Assembly (NCBI GenBank): GCA_037447605.1
Contig: CM074818.1
Coordinates: 1,438,617 to 1,502,616 of the forward strand
Direction: 5' to 3'
DNA length: 64,000 nt
Source: Zygnema circumcarinatum SAG 698-1b
Taxonomy: Eukaryota; Plantae; Zygnematophyceae
In this document: positions 2,753 through 53,940 of the stretch, piece by piece
Position numbering within the stretch: position 1 is the first letter of the stretch
How the letters are laid out: every line of letters begins with the position of its first letter
Notes under the pieces: model-generated
Databases searched by the model: none
What the model was told of the DNA's origin: nothing
What the model saw: only the letters and a program-made list of their open reading frames with translations
Translations under genes and position numbers: made by a program

Positions 2753-3957
2753 GGTGAAGCTTGCTTACTTGAAAGCTCTAAACTCTCATAACACAAACCC
2801 TTCATTCAACCCACTCCTTCGTTGATGCCTTGGCTGCTGTTGTGCAGTCTCCAAAGCCTTGCAAGCATGGCGGGCCCTGTTCGAGAAGCTGCGGGTGCTC
2901 CGAGACAAGCACAGGATGCTGGTGGGGTTGGAACCACGAGTGCCATTCCAAAAGAGGTGCAGCGCATGCTCACTTACTTGCTTGATGCCGGATCGGACGG
3001 CTCCAACGCCTTCGATGCGGCGGCGATGGGCATAGATCCGAGTGACTGGGACGGCCCACTTTCTCAACTCCAAATTGAGAGCCCAAAAGGGGGGTCCTCT
3101 CCTCACGTCACAGAATGGCAAGGGAACAGGGTTCAGCTGGAAAGAAGAGTGGGGCTACTAAGGGAAGCTTTAGATACAGGGGAGCCGTTCCCTTCCTGTA
3201 CCACTCCTCAGCTTGTGGGGATGGCTTTGGTTCTATTCTTGCAGGCGCTGCCTCAGCCTCTTATATCACGCGAGGTGACTGAAATCATTGACAGTAGTGA
3301 GGGGCTGATGGCGAAGCAGTCGCTTATGGCTGTCTTGGAGAAAATAGATGGGATGCGTCTCCTTATGTTGGATGCATTGCTTGTACTCCTTCACGCCCTC
3401 TTGAGGAGTCGCATCGCCAACCACTTTGCTATCAAGGAAGTCGGTACGTGAGCGAGTAATGGAGACTTTTTCAACCTGACAGTCGCCATGCTTTGACTGC
3501 AAGTGGTGTATTTATGCAGGACGGGATTTTGGTTGAGAGAGGGATTCGTGTGTCTGCTGTTTCGGGCATTGGCTGCTATGTGTAAACCTGTATCATGGAA
3601 CCACTTCCGAAAACAGCTTAACTTTTTTCTAAGGACAACAGAAAGCGAGGTCGCTGCTTAATGTGGAGCACTGAAAGGGGGGTCAGTGTTGGTGTCGGTG
3701 CTGCTGCTCATATACCCATTTCTATGGAGGTTTGACCTTCTCACATGCATCACATGAAGTCCACATATGTGATGTTGGCACTGAACCCGGAACCCTGCCC
3801 GCCTATCCCCCCTCCCCCCCCACCTCCATCTGCAGCTGCAGTATTTGCGAGCGCAATATTCCCGGAGGCAGGAGGAGCGGTGGAGAGGAAGAGGGTGTTC
3901 CGGCGGAGGAGCAAGTTCGTGCAGCAGCTCATTGACGACCGCCTCTCCTCGGGGTGA
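1..3957 (+). CDS. OCRL/INPP5B-type inositol polyphosphate 5-phosphatase, 3' part (end of catalytic domain, ASH domain, RhoGAP-like domain); 5' end outside window
   Basis: Phase-consistent exons <1-210, 2216-2541, 2848-3443, 3836-3957. The 5-phosphatase motif SDHRPV is followed by an ASH-like segment (VNFGDVRY...FELQNTGEVTAHF...GTLEPGE...LVVKVEGGGDRFL) and an OCRL-like RhoGAP segment (IPKEVQRMLTYL...ALVLFLQALPQPLI). Confidence 0.85.
2645..2752. repeat. Compound (CT)n-(CA)n-(CT)n microsatellite in intron
   Basis: Directly visible. Confidence 0.95.
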
Positions 3958-6020: not shown

Positions 6021-6216
6021 AAAACGGTCGTACAATTCTCAGCTGAATTCCGTCGTTGAGCTGATTTAGGGTTTTGTGACAAAGCCTTCCAAGAGCCTGT
6101 TTGAAGCAGGGGGGAAGGTGGGGGGGAAGGGAAGAGAAAGGTCTAAAATTTAGGGCTTAGGGTTTGTCTCGGCGATTTCCCGCGCTTGTGCTCCCTCCCT
6201 CCCTCCCTCTCCCGCC

Positions 6217-9200
6217 ATGGCTAGCTTTTTCGGATCAGGCGTTAGCGGCCGGTTCGGCGAAATCTGGAGCAACCGCTTCACCAGCTTCCGCGCGGGCGCA
6301 GAGAGGGAGAGGGGGAGGGAGAGGGAGGGAGAGAGAGAGGGAGACATCCCGCACGGCGGGGCGGAGCCGGGCCTCCTCGAAGACCTCAAGTTCGGTGGCC
6401 CCGCCCTCCGCCTCTCCGCGCCATGGGAAGGCCCCGCCGCCGCCTCCAGCCGGGCCTACCCCTACACCTTCGAACCCCCCTCCGGCCACACAGCCAATGG
6501 CAGGCCGCCATCTGGCGAGCTGATGGAGAAGTACGGCCCCTCTGACGCAAGCGCCCGAGGCGCGCAGGAGTTCGCCCGGAAGACCAAGACGGGGGCGGAG
6601 GTTCGATCCCAGGTTCAGGCAGTAATAGAGGGTACGGCGGGCCTGCAGAGGCCGAGAGTTGTATGGAAGTTGGGGATTGCATATGCAGTGTCGGTGCTCA
6701 TAGTGATTCTGCTCTCCTTGGCGGGGCAGATAGTGGTGCAGTATGCAGTGACGAGGTCGTATAGGGACTCAGAGCTTGTGAATGTGGCGGGGAGGCAGAG
6801 GATGTTGAGTCAGATGATAAGTAAGGACTCGCTGGCCATTCAGCTGCACCTGCTGACGGGGCAGGATGCGAGCTACTATTGGGGGGAGCTGAGGAGCAAG
6901 TTGCCGATTTGGAGGCAGTCGCAGAGCGACATACGGTACGGGAACAAGACGTTGGGGCTGTCGAGGGCCTCCAAGGGGAGCATTGTGAAGGCCTTCGAGG
7001 TGCAGGAGCCTTACTTTTTCGCTATGCGTGGGGCGGCGGAGAGGATATTGGAACTGAATGAGCAGACGATCACCAACACGTCGGAGGAGTACAGGTGAGC
7101 GTTGACTTCCTTCTCGTCGTCGTCGTCTCTCTCTCTCTCTCTCGCTCTCTCTCTGACACTGTCTCTGTCTCTCTCTGGCGATGTATCTTTTGCTTTGGTT
7201 GTAGCATTAGCGGCGGAAGCATTGTAGCATTAGCATTACATACTACGGAAGTATGTAATGTAGGAACAGGTGAGTGAATGAACAAATGTGGAACTGTCTT
7301 TTGGAGGTTGTAGGGTTTAGGGTTTTTAGGTATGCAGCAACACAGCCCTTTGATGTTTCGTGTGAGCGCATTGTCGAGGGTTTATTTTGATGAGCCAATG
7401 TAGAACACATTCCAACAGTTTGTCATTTTAAGGAAACCCCGGACTCGTTCTGAAGAATTTGGGCAATGCAGCTCGTATGAAGAGCAGATGCATCCTCCAA
7501 GATGTACAGAAGGGCTGCCTGTTTGGACTTTGGCTAGGAAATCAAGATGAAGAAAGATTTAAAGAGAGGTCAAGGGAAAGAGCGGGGGGGACAGAAATGG
7601 GGGAGGATGCGCAGAGTAAGAAGGAGAGGCTGGGGGAGGGGGGAGGAGGGAGGTGGAGGGGGACAAGTCGGGGATACTGAAAGGGGGGATGGCTAGAGGA
7701 AAAGTGGTGGGTGGGGGAGGAAGGGGGGGGGGGGAAGAGAGGCCGGAGAGGAAAGGAAGGCGAAGGGGAGAGTGGGGGAGGGGGTAGATTGTGGGAGGGG
7801 AAGAGGAAGAGAAGGAGTGGAGAGGAAGGGGAGACGAGGAGAGTATGAGAGGGGGGAGAATGTGGGAAGGGTTGAGGGGGAGTGTGGGAGAGTGGAGAGG
7901 GGGAGGGAGAGAGAGAGGGAGAGAGAGAGGAAGGGAGAGGGGGAGGGCGAATGCTGGGATGGGGGAGGCGAATGGGGAGAATGGGGGAGCGGGAGAGTGA
8001 AGGGAAGGGAGAAGGGAGATGAAGGGAAGGGTGATTGAGATATAGAGGGAGGAGTGGAGAGCGAGAGAGAGAGAGATTCGAGATGGTTGCCGATGAGGAG
8101 TCTCCGCGGGGTCATCGTTGCGAGTCTCATTTAGGATCATGACGTATGTTTCAACGCATTTAAAAGTAGGTGTGGTAAATGAGGGTGAAGATATGTTTGC
8201 ATTGTAGAAAACCTAACTTGGAAAACCAAAAGCTTCATTCACTTTTCTGAAATTTGCTGGTTAGCTGAGGGGGTGTAAGTCCACTTTATTCCACGCCCTA
8301 TGACCCGTGCCTACTCTATGACCTAGGGTTTTGTACTTGCATGCAATGACAGGAAGGGCAGTGGGAACATTACAATGTTTTTTTGCATGTTCGTTGAGGG
8401 CAATAATGCAGCGGAACAATTTAGGGTTCCGAAGTGAGCAAGAATTACGTTTCATGTGTGTGATCCGTTTTAAGGAGCCGTCCTCCCTCGTCTTTTCGTT
8501 TTAAGTTTTGGAAGAAGAAGGGGCAGAGTTAAGTTGTTCAGTCTTACTACTGCGATTGTAGAAAAGCACCAAACGGCCAAATCCTTATGGTAATGTGACA
8601 AGGGCTACGATTCCCTTTTGAATGGTACAGTCGACCCAAATCAATCAAAGTCAATTTAAGTCAAGTCAAGGCATTCTCCCTCCAAACCTGAGAGCTCTTT
8701 ACCTGCTCATTCTCTCTCCTTCTCGCCTTATGCTTATCCTGAGCGAATTTTTGGGATGGCGGAGGAGCTTGCAGTGTCCTGAAATCGCAGGTGGAGGTGA
8801 TTCTGGCCAATGAGAAATTTTTCTGGACCATGCAAGATGGCATAACGAAGCAGTTTGAGAAGCTCTCCCGCAGCCATCTCGAGTTTGTGCTGATCGTTTC
8901 ATGGGTCCTCCACGCACTGGTCATTGTCGCGCTGCTGCTGGAGGGAGCCTTCCTCTTCCTTCCCGCACTGCGGAAAATTCAAGTTCTTATTGACGAGCGG
9001 TTCAGACTCATTCGTCGCGCACTCGAGTGAGTCACAAAGAAACATTGAACACGTGTGTGGTTTCTCTTGCCGCTTTCGCTTGTCGACCCTCTTCGTCCCT
9101 TCCTGCTGCGAATCGCAAGCTAGTCCCCAAACTTGCTCTGATGCTCGTTCCCTCCCTCCCTCCCCTCCCTCCCCTCCCCCTCCTCCNNNNNNNNNNGGAG

Positions 9201-11144
9201 AAGGTTGAGAAGGGGGGGGGAAGAAGGAAGTGAGGGAGAAGGAAGAGAAGCCGGGGGGGGGAAAGGGGGGGCCGGTGGGTGGAGAAGGTTGAGAAAAGGG
9301 GGGTGGGGGGGTGAGAGGCGGGGGGGAGAGGAAGGCGAGAAGAGGTTGGGGGGAAATTGGGGAAGGGAGGGGGAGGCCGAGAAATAGAGGGGGGGGAGGG
9401 AGGGGGTGAGAGGGGGAGGGAGAGGGAAGCGGGAAGTAGAAGGTGTGGGATGATGGATGCAGAGGCAAAACTGAGGAGTTTCCTAAAGTGATTTGCTTTG
9501 TTCGGTTCTTGAACTAAAGCAGTAGAAAGGGTCGAATCCATCTCTCCTGTGTGTGGAACTGCCTTTGATAGCAGCAGCTAGTTGAACTGCAAGATGAACT
9601 GCAGCAAGTTCAACAATTGTCGCAGGCCGAGTAAACCTTCAATCACAAAAGGTGGCGAATACAGACGGATCTGTCTTCATTGTGGAAGGGAGGGAGTTGA
9701 GAGGACGCAAGATTTTAAATCTTTATTACTGAAATTTGTCCTCTCTCTTGCTTTTCTGCAGGTGGTCCGACTTTCCAAGAGGAAGGCCTATCCAGGAGTA
9801 TCAGTGGATGTTGATATTGACAATACCATCATGGAGGATCCTGTCTATCAGGTGGATAAGCATCGCCTTCAGCAGGTGTGAAATTCTGAACCCTGAAACT
9901 GCTCAGAGTTTGAGAATCTGAGAGTGGCTAAATCTTTGCATGTGCAAGAGGGTTTGCAAGGGAACGCTGTTGTAATGTTGTCAGTTTCAGTTACGTTGCA
10001 GTTTCACAAAGAGACGTAGTCAGCCACTGTAGGGGCCACTGAGAAACTCGACTTTAAGCCGCTTGGAGGGAATTCCTGTTGTGTGCCGTTCACGAAATGG
10101 TTTTACAGTGTGCTAAACAGCATTGCGCTGAAGATTCTGTGGAGATATTTTGTGGAGAATGTTGAATGTAAGGAGTTGAACTTCATGTAATTGTGCGTTA
10201 GTACGTTGGAGCGGAAGTTATGCTTTTCAAACAGTTTCAGCAGTGCTGATCCCCTCCTTTTTTTGTTTTGTTTCATGTTTGTTTGTCTCTCTGCAGGTTC
10301 TGATCAACCTCCTCAACGACGCATTCCAGGTCACTCTCACGGGTAATGTCAAAATGCGTGTACTCGCTGTGGAGGGGAGGGATCTGCTTCACTTCGAGGT
10401 AGAAGATGGAGGGGGGGGTTTGAGTCTGGAGGAGCAAGCAACAATTTTCCAGCCTCTGCTTGTGGGCGAAAGCCGCGCAGAGGGCAAAGGAAAAGACGTG
10501 CAACAAAGCCTCAATCGCTACTTTGTCAAAATGCTCGTGGAGCTGCAGGTATCATCTATCTTCTGAATGCCAAAAGTCCCAATAGTCCGAACGACTTTGA
10601 CACAGAAGAAGGATTTACTTACTTACAATGGAGAATTTTTAGTTATTCTCGTCTATTAGCAGCATCGATATTCCTGCTCCAACCCCTCCCAAAGACCAAC
10701 TGCCTCGCTCTCTCTCTCTCTCGTGCTCTCTCTCTATCTCTCTCTCTCTCTTTCCCTCTCTCTCTCTCTCGATATCTCTTCCACCCTCCTTTCCCCTCCC
10801 TCCTAATCTTTTCGTGAATGTCGGGGTGTGGCTGACAGGGAGGAGTCGTCAACTATGAAATCAAGGAGGGGGAGGGTACATGTTTCTGGTTCGAAATTCC
10901 GTGCCACAGAGGAGGCCCCCTCGGCCTGCAAGTGGTGGAAGATGACCAGACTCCGGAGGATGGGAGGATGTCTGCTCTCGCTGTGAAGGATTCGAGCATG
11001 TCCTCTATCTATGCGAGGGAGTATGTGGGGGGACTCTCCAGCCATCATCATCATCTCTACGGCTCGCCCAGTCAGGATCAAGATCAGGAGGAGGACTGGG
11101 CGAGGAAACCATCAGAGGTCAATGGAGGGGACCACGCCGTATGA
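6217..11144 (+). CDS. Two-TM sensor protein: PilJ/NarX-like extracytoplasmic domain plus degenerate histidine-kinase ATPase (HATPase_c) domain
   Basis: Exons 6217-7094, 8775-9026, 9463-9487 (tentative), 9572-~9607 (tentative), 9762-9875, 10297-10548, 10839-11144. TM1 LGIAYAVSVLIVILLSLAG; P-box DSELVNVAGRQRMLSQMI; TM2 ...VALLLEGAFLFLP; HATPase motifs DKHRLQQVLINLLNDA, EVEDGGGGL, IFQP, LVELQGG, GEGTCFWFEIP. Confidence 0.85.
7620..8075 (+). repeat. Intronic polypurine tract
   Basis: G/A-dominated low complexity in intron 1 of the sensor gene. Confidence 0.9.
9187..9196. other. Assembly gap (10 N) between a CT tract and a GA tract in intron 2 of the sensor gene
   Basis: Run of n; the true length is unknown. 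Confidence 0.99.
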
Positions 11145-11552
11145 GGATGAGCCACGTGTACTCTCTCTACCGATTGGCTCGCCTCCTTCTAGTCTTATCT
11201 TATATTGTCCTTCTTCCTTCTTCCTCCTTCGTTAAGAGCATTCATGTACAGGTCCTGGGCTGGTTAGAGAGCTCGGGTTACAATATTTAGGCTGATGGGT
11301 TTGTGGGCCTAGGGTGAGGGGGGTAGGAGTAGGGTTAGGGTTAGGGTTAAGGTTGCCGTTGAGGTTGAGGATGCGCCTGGTTGAGGCAACGGTGGTTCCC
11401 CAATTTCCTATTTATTACTTTTCTGTAGCTTACAGAATAATAAGCGAAAAATCAAACACATGTATTGCTGCTGGGAGCAGCTTTTCCCAATAACCTCGAG
11501 GGTATCTGATAGAGGGAACGAAGGCGCTCAGCTGAGTGGCGGATGCGTCCGT

Positions 11553-12205: not shown

Positions 12206-17929
<5,724 letters not shown>

Positions 17930-23146: not shown

Positions 23147-25984
23147 TCAGCCGAGAGCTGGATCTCGAATTACTTGGGGAACGAAGTCACTCGACAAGTA
23201 GTTTTGGAAAAAGTCGGCATACATCTCGTAGCGGGCAGTCATCCTGAAGCACCATCTGTCCTTGACTTGCTGGCAGAGGTTGAGGTCCATCTCAGCGATC
23301 ATAAGGCCATCTCGGCACCTCGAAAGACTTGGCGTCCGGGAAGCATCCGGAGCAGCAAAGTAGCTCGATCCATAGAAATGCCCAAAGTCTTTGTGGGCCG
23401 CCTTACCGTCTCCGGAAGTGAAGGCATTTGGAAAAGTTTCCGTCCCAACTCGGTTGATGGCACCAACAAAATAGCTGTTGGCAATAGCAGCATTTCGGGC
23501 CTGCACATATTCGCCAATCCTTCATGAGCAAATGACATGCAAAACAAAGTTCTAAACATAAAGAGAGCAGCTGTTAATGATAAACTTGAACAACAACGAA
23601 AGGAGAGCAAGGAAGGCGAAAGGGAGGTCAGCCAATAGTGTGCAGTGAAAAGGAGAAGCTAAGTATATAGAAATGGATCACAAGTGACTGCTAGCCGTTT
23701 AACTATCCAACAAGTGATTGTGTCGCGTTATTGCTGGAAGGAAATTAAAAAAAAATATATATATATATATAGCAACAGCCCACCTCAATGCCCCACATCG
23801 GTTCGCTAAGTTCTCCCACTGTTGCAGAGGGATTGAAAACAATCTCGGCTCCATTCATGCCGAAAGCCTGCCAATTCATGGTATGGTGGCGTCCATAGCA
23901 GATATTTACTGCAATTTTTCCAAAAACTGTTTCGAAAACAGGATGCCCTGTGTTCCCCTCCATGTAGTAAGAGCTTTCATTGAAGTCCCCAATTCGTGGA
24001 ATATGGTTCTGCACACGCAACAGCCGGAGTCTCTTTGAATCATTAAACTAGTCCCTGTCTGCCAAATTCCATATGATTCTGATGGCAAACTGAACGATAC
24101 GTGACAATTGCAACCTAATCTCTAATCATACGAGTGGTTTACGAACTATTAGCTACCTTTCCAATAGTTGCAATGCCATACTTTGATTTCTACCAAAGCA
24201 CCACCTCAACAAAATTAGCACTTCTCTGAAAAAAAATCACAGTCAATCAATCATGCCACCAACAGGTGTCTACTCAAAGAACTCTTTGCTAAGCAATTCT
24301 CATAGCAAAATCCTGAAAAAGAGCACATCCAAAGAGAACCAAGCCATCAAAAAATAGAGCTTCAATCTGCAGGATAGCCGCTTGCCTTTCGGTGCTTTCC
24401 AATCACGTTTCCATTGTTTCCAATAACCACTGCTGTGTTCCAAATGGTGCCTCCGTGCTCTTCATCTCGCTCAAGAATAGAGCTCACGATCACCATGTTG
24501 TGCTTCTTCGCCAGCTGCTGGATAAATTTCACACTATCGCCATTGTGAGCTGATTCTGCAAACTCGCACCAGCTGCGCTCGCGCGTACAGAAAGCAAACG
24601 GCATGGTCCATGCTTCCTGTAAAATAACAATGCCCGAAATGTGTTAAATCACTTAGACTGCAGTAAAATTGTACGCAAAGCACTTGTTGCAATCTCGAAA
24701 AGGAAAAAAGCCAGAATTACCAACAGGCAATCTGATCACTGATTCGAAGAAATGGTAATCTTGCTGATACATCAACAAAAGGCGATTCATTATTTGCTCA
24801 CTTCAAAGATACCCTTAGTGGCTGCTTCTTCTTCTCCACTTTCGCGAGCCTCGGAACTTAGCATGGGAAGAGAATTTGCATACGCCGTTGCATCAGCTCA
24901 ACACCCCAGAAGTTACTGCTATGACAAGGTATGCGAGAATCACCTGTAAACACACGATGTTTACTCCCGCCTCGCCTGCCACGTCAATCAAGGCTCCAAC
25001 ACGATCCATGATCGCCTGACGCTGCTCTGCATATGGTGCTGTGGTCGGCAGCACAATGGCATTTTGTATGAGACCAACTCGCACAACCCGGGGCTTCCGC
25101 AGCTGCTCTGGCACTGCAGTGAAGCGATATGCCTGCAACCGAGCTATAAAAGTTTTTTGGATTTTGAACACAAAAGAATTGGAAACGCATAGATGGTAAC
25201 TGAGCTGTTCTGGACAACCGATGACGTGGCAAATGCGTCTTACAGAATTGGTTTCCGCAGGCAGAAAGGCCCTTGTTGGTATAGCGGCGCAGTAAACTTG
25301 TACTAACTTTGCGTGCTTCAAAAGAGTTTCTGAGCTATGACAGAGCACAGGGTCTCACCTGGAGATCAAAGTCAGAATTCTTAGCAGAAGCCAGCAAGTC
25401 ATCGTGAAGTGGAATGGAGGACGGAATGCTGGAGCCATTGTAGCCATGGAGGATACGGAAGACTTCCTGCGTAGCGGAACAAGCAACAGCGTTGCAACCA
25501 TGAGATGCAATGGCTAGCCTGCCAAACAGACTGGAATTCCTTAATGAGCAAATCGAACAACTATAAGAAGTTCGCAGAACTTCTGAAATATTTCTGACGA
25601 GCTTTCTTTATCCACATGGGGGATTGTAAGCTGATCTTCCACTCATCAGAACAATGCAGCTGCTAATGATTAAGTAATGAGAGAATTGCTTGGCGCCTGC
25701 TGCCATCAAAGGCTGCTGCTCAACGCCGCAAGAGCGCATGTCCGCAGCGCGATTCAAAGTAACAGCCATTTTTTTTCAATAAATAGAGCATGGAATTCAC
25801 ATTTTATTGCCGTGAAAGCGTTTGCAAACATGTGCAAATCATGCGTCTTTCGTCTGTTTCCAACCTGCAGCTTGTCTGCCGGAACATGCTCCTTCAGCAG
25901 GTCCTCCAGCGTCTCATGCCCGTGAATGCTCCCGTCCTTGTACGCCTCCCTGCTCTTCTCCCCCTCCGCGTTCGTGCTTCCCAT
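23147..25984 (-). CDS. PYD3: Beta-ureidopropionase (beta-alanine synthase; nitrilase superfamily)
   Basis: 6 exons. Catalytic triad contexts [16 protein letters not shown] (Glu), [16 protein letters not shown] (Lys) and NICYGRHH (Cys); [21 protein letters not shown]. Confidence 0.96.

Positions 25985-43175: not shown

Positions 43176-53940
<10,765 letters not shown>

Follow-up and report, generated by a model that had tools for sequence, protein, structure and literature searches.

Does the gene at positions 6217–11144 of a 64,000-nucleotide stretch of the Zygnema circumcarinatum SAG 698-1b genome (assembly GCA_037447605.1, contig CM074818.1, positions 1,438,617 to 1,502,616, forward strand; hereafter the window) encode a eukaryotic nitrate receptor built on a bacterial sensor domain, and, if so, what kind of output would it have? 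An initial annotation of the window had proposed a horizontally acquired, domesticated receptor that joins a NarX/PilJ-type sensor to a histidine kinase-type ATPase. Our comparative analyses indicated that the best overall explanation of the locus, which we hold at a probability of roughly 0.55, is a 709-residue, nitrate-binding receptor pseudokinase of bacterial descent, which would be dimeric and has two predicted transmembrane (TM) helices.

That the gene is real, spliced and expressed is practically certain. Its coding sequence, as determined from the reading of the exons and from transcript contigs, comprises 2130 nt (709 aa) once a 328 nt stretch spanning an assembly gap is counted in, and all its exons lie on the forward strand. 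The coding part of exon 1 (6217–7094, 878 nt, ending in phase 2) encodes a disordered cytosolic N-terminus, a conserved juxtamembrane block, TM1 and most of the PilJ sensor domain. It is followed by intron 1 (7095–8774, 1680 nt, GT..AG, phase 2), whose position is common to Closterium and the genomic homologue L085, and by exon 2 (8775–9026, ending in phase 2), which supplies the last sensor helix, TM2 and a direct helical linker that lacks a HAMP domain. The ATPase domain starts in exon 4 (9762–9875, beginning in phase 0) and has its HATPase_c core in exon 5 (10297–10548); the coding part of exon 6 (10839–11144) holds the last ATPase strands, a disordered tail and the stop codon, and has no receiver domain. 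The introns and the spliced transcript expected in the initial annotation were borne out by GT..AG joints skipping 1680, 421 and 290 nt, representing three introns, which were exact in the transcript contigs of X2, X14 and X16, each a run of a different study (library type not on record; records of 2467–2469 nt in X2 and X16). None of the three spliced joints was seen in the DNA-type run X1. The transcript contigs also showed that the transcript runs on beyond 11300, 3' of the stop.

The exons as initially read are not in frame with one another, as the phase is 2 at the end of exon 2 (9026) and 0 at the start of exon 4 (9762). Between them lies an assembly gap of 10 N (9187–9196). The transcript contigs hold 324 other letters between 9026 and 9758, which amount to 328 nt when counted to 9762, and since 2 + 328 = 330, the reading frame is restored across the gap. 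These 328 nt correspond to 110 codons including the split codon, and the nearest orthologue, P0001, has exactly 110 aa at this place. Furthermore, L085 has exons of 252, 328, 114 and 252 nt, equal to those of the Zygnema gene, and its 328-nt exon encodes the region of dimerisation and histidine phosphotransfer (DHp) with the H-box at the same place. The gap of 10 N therefore hides the H-box exon of this gene, by homology a single exon, of at least 328 nt. In the readable part of intron 2 the only candidates for a bridging exon were of low complexity or unconvincing; the DHp segment of the orthologue had no copy anywhere in the 64-kb window, this protein was not found in a word-indexed protein database, and two metagenome scans gave no match for the hidden exon. 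Because the letters of the hidden exon are not readable, the H-box residue of this gene cannot be read and a stop codon inside it is not formally excluded. The gap is flanked by a C-rich tract on one side and a G-rich low-complexity tract on the other (9140–9440). Since a gap written as 10 N stands for no fewer than 328 nt here, further exons may lie concealed in the remaining 10-N gaps of the assembly.

Searches were run with the exons of the spliced model one at a time, and P0001 stood in for the full-length protein. The PilJ profile match that had been predicted was found: PF13675 matched aa 176–279 in exon 1 (6742–7053, forward strand; E=1.7e-7, 31.7 bits against a cut-off of 26.6), and sequence and fold comparison gave the same domain. 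The motif quoted in the initial annotation was present at 6766–6825, where it had been likened both to the P-box of NarX and to the N-box of McpN; only the second likeness held, as the motif contains an McpN-type N-box (6778–6813) and is not a NarX P-box. This N-box agrees at 12/12 positions with the pattern drawn up from nitrate-specific McpN homologues for PilJ domains that bind nitrate (PMC6381276); the pattern occurs once in the window, where ~1e-7 occurrences are expected by chance. Within it, Gly192 (6790–6792) and Arg195 (6799–6801) are the two residues of the G-x-x-R site with which NarQ and McpN bind nitrate, so the nitrate-type arginine is indeed retained. Among solved structures, McpN (6GCV, E=0.007) was the best match by sequence, followed by NarQ. 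AlphaFold modelled the portion encoded by exon 1 (predicted local distance difference test score, pLDDT, 89) as a helical bundle whose sensor helix 1 is continuous with TM1, and the top natural structure matches of this model were PilJ (Z 10.6) and McpN (Z 9.9), which are modest values for a helical bundle.

Hydropathy placed TM1 at 6670–6741 (approximately aa 152–175) and TM2 at 8884–8964 in exon 2; the initial annotation was right that a TM2 exists, but the letters it gave, LLLEGAFLFLP, are only the end of that helix. The juxtamembrane block, approximately 33 aa before TM1 (6556–6654, aa 114–146), is kept in most algal members of the family, divergent in Spirogloea and missing from the bacterial relative compared. 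An N-glycosylation sequon (6943–6951) lies within the PilJ domain, and sequons were found in 11/11 algal sensors, at one or two common positions, versus 41% of 135 bacterial sensors. This pattern agrees with passage of the sensor through the secretory pathway, and does not tell plasma membrane, endoplasmic reticulum (ER) and vacuole apart. We considered whether the Ser-rich start might be a chloroplast transit peptide and discarded the idea, as the N-termini of other members are acidic and their sensors carry sequons.

McpN, which carries this motif, binds nitrate with a dissociation constant of 47 µM and requires the arginine to do so, and on the strength of the shared binding box we consider it probable that the Zygnema receptor binds nitrate as well. 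Among related bacterial loci, 39/80 had nirB (nitrite reductase) within 3 kb, and one had a nitrate ATP-binding cassette (ABC) ATPase gene. This comparison speaks for nitrate as the ligand, with limits. The bacterial loci came from an N-box search, which selected for the motif, and 35/39 of the nirB-linked loci are from Bacteroidota, so that they amount to a few independent cases; Bacteroidota, moreover, need not be the donor. The Bacteroidota loci (L007, L012–L082) have a recurrent order of nirB, small conserved genes, an N-box PilJ sensor kinase and a response regulator, and this order is likely that of a nitrate-assimilation two-component system.

The ligand range differs within the known proteins, as McpN is nitrate-specific and NarX/NarQ bind nitrate, nitrite and sulfite; the structure did not explain the difference, and specificity is therefore not readable from sequence. 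For this reason we weighed a sensor that has been retuned (to nitrite, sulfite or bicarbonate) or that reports on the lumen of the ER or vacuole instead of the outside. Such a sensor would be in keeping with the ligands of NarX/NarQ, with the variation of the N-box among algal members and with sequons that indicate secretory passage only and not the final membrane. However, the Zygnema copy bears the exact pattern defined on nitrate-specific McpN homologues, and we regard this reading as unlikely.

The C-terminal part of the protein has the fold named in the initial annotation, but with signs of catalytic decay that were missed there. HATPase_c was clear in a 70%-identical orthologue (50 bits), whereas exon 5 alone gave 22 bits, below the cut-off; the ATPase fold is kept, as seen in P0001. 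The N-box Asn of the ATPase is replaced by Asp at 10318–10320, a change also present in P0001. The Asp-x-Gly of the G1 box is kept (10405–10419), and the G2 box (approximately 10486–10515) has no glycines, the G-x-G-L-G pattern being gone in both this gene and P0001. At the phospho-histidine site of the H-box, Asn is found in P0001, in its sister P0002 (support 95/94), in L085 and in Klebsormidium, and by parsimony the Asn in the nearest relatives would also be present in the Zygnema gene. After splicing, the final exon runs directly to the stop codon; it gave no Pfam match and hence no receiver. Together, these features make it rather likely that this copy is a kinase-dead receptor pseudokinase, and with the kinase part degenerate, a classical phosphorelay is an improbable output.

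Some observations count against loss of the kinase activity. The H-box histidine is kept in Mesotaenium, Closterium, P0005 and Spirogloea, the H-box of the Zygnema gene itself lies in the gap with its residue unread, and the replacement Asp might still bind Mg. An active, orthodox nitrate-sensing histidine kinase, in which the hidden exon keeps the histidine and the protein phosphorylates a histidine-containing phosphotransfer protein (HPt) or a response regulator, would draw on these four histidine-keeping algal lineages and the unread residue, as well as on the preserved G1 Asp-Gly and fold. Yet the Asn-to-Asp change and the glycine-less G2 box are visible in this gene, and its nearest relatives have Asn at the histidine site, which together render an active kinase quite unlikely. 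The same decay could be expected of a protein that does not signal itself and acts as a decoy or an inhibitory subunit, either by pairing with a paralogue or by sequestering a shared partner, in which case the ligand would be of little consequence. But the binding box, both TM helices and the linker are strongly conserved in the members lacking the histidine, which suggests selection on the input, and a decoy of this kind seems distinctly improbable.

The putative nitrate-binding pseudokinase belongs to a small group of proteins with long N-termini that ranked top in a protein search covering 1.84 billion representatives. Its named members are from Mesotaenium, Spirogloea, Closterium and Klebsormidium nitens (GAQ86381), and its closest relative among the matches listed was P0001, with 50% identity in the sensor and 68–73% in exons 2, 4 and 5. 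In two sensor trees, both quick searches, exon 1 grouped with streptophyte algal proteins in one clade (Shimodaira–Hasegawa-like approximate likelihood ratio test, SH-aLRT, 96–98), and the full-length algal orthologues formed one clade versus the bacterial kinases with a support of 100/100. This placement would assign the gene to the Zygnematophyceae. All five intron positions are common to Closterium and L085, and three are common to Klebsormidium. The single clade and the shared introns indicate that the gene is an old resident of streptophyte algae and not contamination, and the best explanation of its distribution is that it has been kept there at least since the Klebsormidium/Zygnematophyceae split. 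Contamination by bacterial DNA, a pseudogene or an assembly artefact, for which the visible exons being out of frame across the gap might speak, is scarcely credible given in-frame spliced transcripts in three studies, the introns held in common and the eukaryotic, intron-containing neighbouring genes, and counts as refuted unless the hidden 328 letters contain a stop codon.

The bacterial origin and domestication proposed in the initial annotation were supported by this clade, the shared introns and splicing; the horizontal route was not. The nearest bacterial sensors were from Chloroflexota, Planctomycetota, Bacteroidota and Cyanobacteriota, and the algal clade had no supported sister in the sensor tree, so that neither horizontal nor endosymbiotic transfer is favoured and no donor can be named. 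A cyanobacterial (plastid) origin was considered and not adopted, as the algal clade was not nested among 8 cyanobacterial sequences; with its sister unsupported, neither origin is established. A profile search returned just two already known members, and atlas searches returned bacterial PilJ and kinase clusters only.

Variation within the family was also observed. The G-x-x-R core is kept and the rest of the N-box altered in P0155 (Klebsormidium GAQ86381), P0011 (Spirogloea) and P0001 (alignment A3), with Met to Tyr and Leu to Arg in Klebsormidium and Leu-Ser to Tyr-Cys in P0001; these altered boxes are natural variants that bear on ligand specificity. An error-rich, seemingly intron-containing homologue on a Joint Genome Institute (JGI) metagenome contig (L083:4860-10150) falls inside the algal clade and keeps the H-box histidine.

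Among known systems, the Zygnema protein resembles McpN (PA2788, PDB 6GCV) in its PilJ sensor, exact N-box and G-x-x-R site, with approximately 24% identity over the aligned sensor, and differs from it in output, McpN having that of a methyl-accepting chemotaxis protein (MCP). With Escherichia coli NarX/NarQ it shares a PilJ-family sensor between two TM helices, with Gly and Arg kept; those proteins, however, have the P-box variant, a HAMP domain, an S-helix and a HisKA_3 DHp. In the Pfam searches the algal gene gave no HAMP match and its orthologues gave HisKA or no DHp match, never HisKA_3, and its ATPase is degenerate. NarX/NarQ proper was rejected on this architecture. The closest bacterial sequences, at 35–40% in the sensor, were HAMP-less PilJ-HisKA-HATPase(-REC) kinases (e.g., P0008) of Chloroflexota, Planctomycetota, Cyanobacteriota and Bacteroidota, which have the same domain order and the same motif at the end of TM2. 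Unlike the algal protein, these kinases have canonical H, N and G2 boxes and often receivers, and have neither introns nor the extended N-terminus and sequon pattern. Plants, too, combine an intact sensor with a decayed histidine kinase module whose signalling goes through contacts between proteins, as in the subfamily II ethylene receptors and the histidine kinase-related domain (HKRD) of phytochromes, but their sensor domains are unrelated to PilJ and the likeness is one of analogy only.

The initial annotation had taken the route to be new to plants, and this did not stand, as the family and the nitrate hypothesis are already in print. Kabbara et al. described NarX-like sensing regions in KniteHK29, KniteHK44, SmoelHK12, SmoelHK15, PpateHK38 and the Physarum protein PpolyHK39, and in 2019 proposed horizontal acquisition for soil nitrogen sensing (PMC6324907). 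Like the Zygnema protein, those of streptophytes are receptors in which two TM helices flank a NarX/PilJ-type sensor and the C-terminus is of kinase type (TM-PilJ-TM-kinase), and a Klebsormidium nitens member, GAQ86381, is in the same clade as the Zygnema gene. The available part of the article reports topology and similarity, and contains no N-box analysis, catalytic decay or experiment. The named moss and Selaginella NarX-like proteins were not identified among our top 150 matches or in word searches. The family is widespread, and literature searches that included few subscription journals found no characterisation of it and no follow-up experiment on the NarX-like plant kinases. New here are the exact McpN-type N-box, the HAMP-less HisKA architecture, the shared introns and the sequons, together with the split into histidine-keeping and histidine-less members and the resolution of the gap as a hidden exon.

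Based on these comparisons, we propose that the receptor descends from a HAMP-less PilJ-HisKA-HATPase kinase of bacteria. Homology to known sensors suggests that a single nitrate (and perhaps nitrite as well) would bind outside the cytosol, on the dimer axis between two Arg195/Gly192 pairs, and binding would shift helix 1, TM1 and TM2, and hence the DHp bundle. The cytosolic part, presumably catalytically weak or dead, probably still binds ATP without autophosphorylation and may hand on the signal by conformation to a protein partner, for which an active histidine kinase or paralogue, an HPt or a Raf-like kinase are candidates. Plant ethylene receptors signal through a Raf-like kinase. More tentatively, we speculate that streptophyte algae sense extracellular nitrate directly via a glycosylated PilJ receptor of bacterial descent, of which one branch is kinase-dead and signals via protein contacts, possibly made by the DHp bundle or the algal-specific juxtamembrane helix; this wider scheme is a possibility that we rate below even odds.

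Several other features of the window were observed. A cyclin-dependent kinase gene (12700–13750 and 16028–17929, reverse strand) with a long acidic, proline-rich N-terminus and a Pfam Pkinase match converges on the receptor gene; it looks similar to CDKG/CDK11. Upstream of the receptor gene, an exon at 2822–3451 (forward strand) had a weak RhoGAP match (E=0.001, below the cut-off). Exons at 47186–49269 and 24893–25348 (both reverse strand) bear a resemblance to a UBP12/13-type deubiquitinase and a beta-ureidopropionase; two fragments were scanned and gave no Pfam match. Short TTAGGG/TTAGGGTTT telomere-like or telo-box repeats flank the receptor gene at 11330–11352 on its 3' side and at 6066–6075 and 6148–6165 on its 5' side.

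The presence of the motif of a proven nitrate binder in a small sensor of a kind already purified and titrated makes the idea directly testable, as do the good presence of the gene in several public transcript sets and the contrasts within the family (histidine kept or lost, box intact or altered). The literature searched attributes the sensing of nitrate in plants to NRT1.1 and NLP7, a network whose functional clades were dated to around the seed-plant ancestor (PMC12502328). Should nitrate binding be borne out, the Zygnema protein would extend the McpN/NarX type of receptor to a eukaryote, and would have a bearing on how algae related to land plants gauge their nitrogen supply. If the wider scheme of a glycosylated, partly kinase-dead receptor family also holds, streptophyte algae would sense nitrate by a route outside the NRT1.1/NLP7 network, and one that may predate it.

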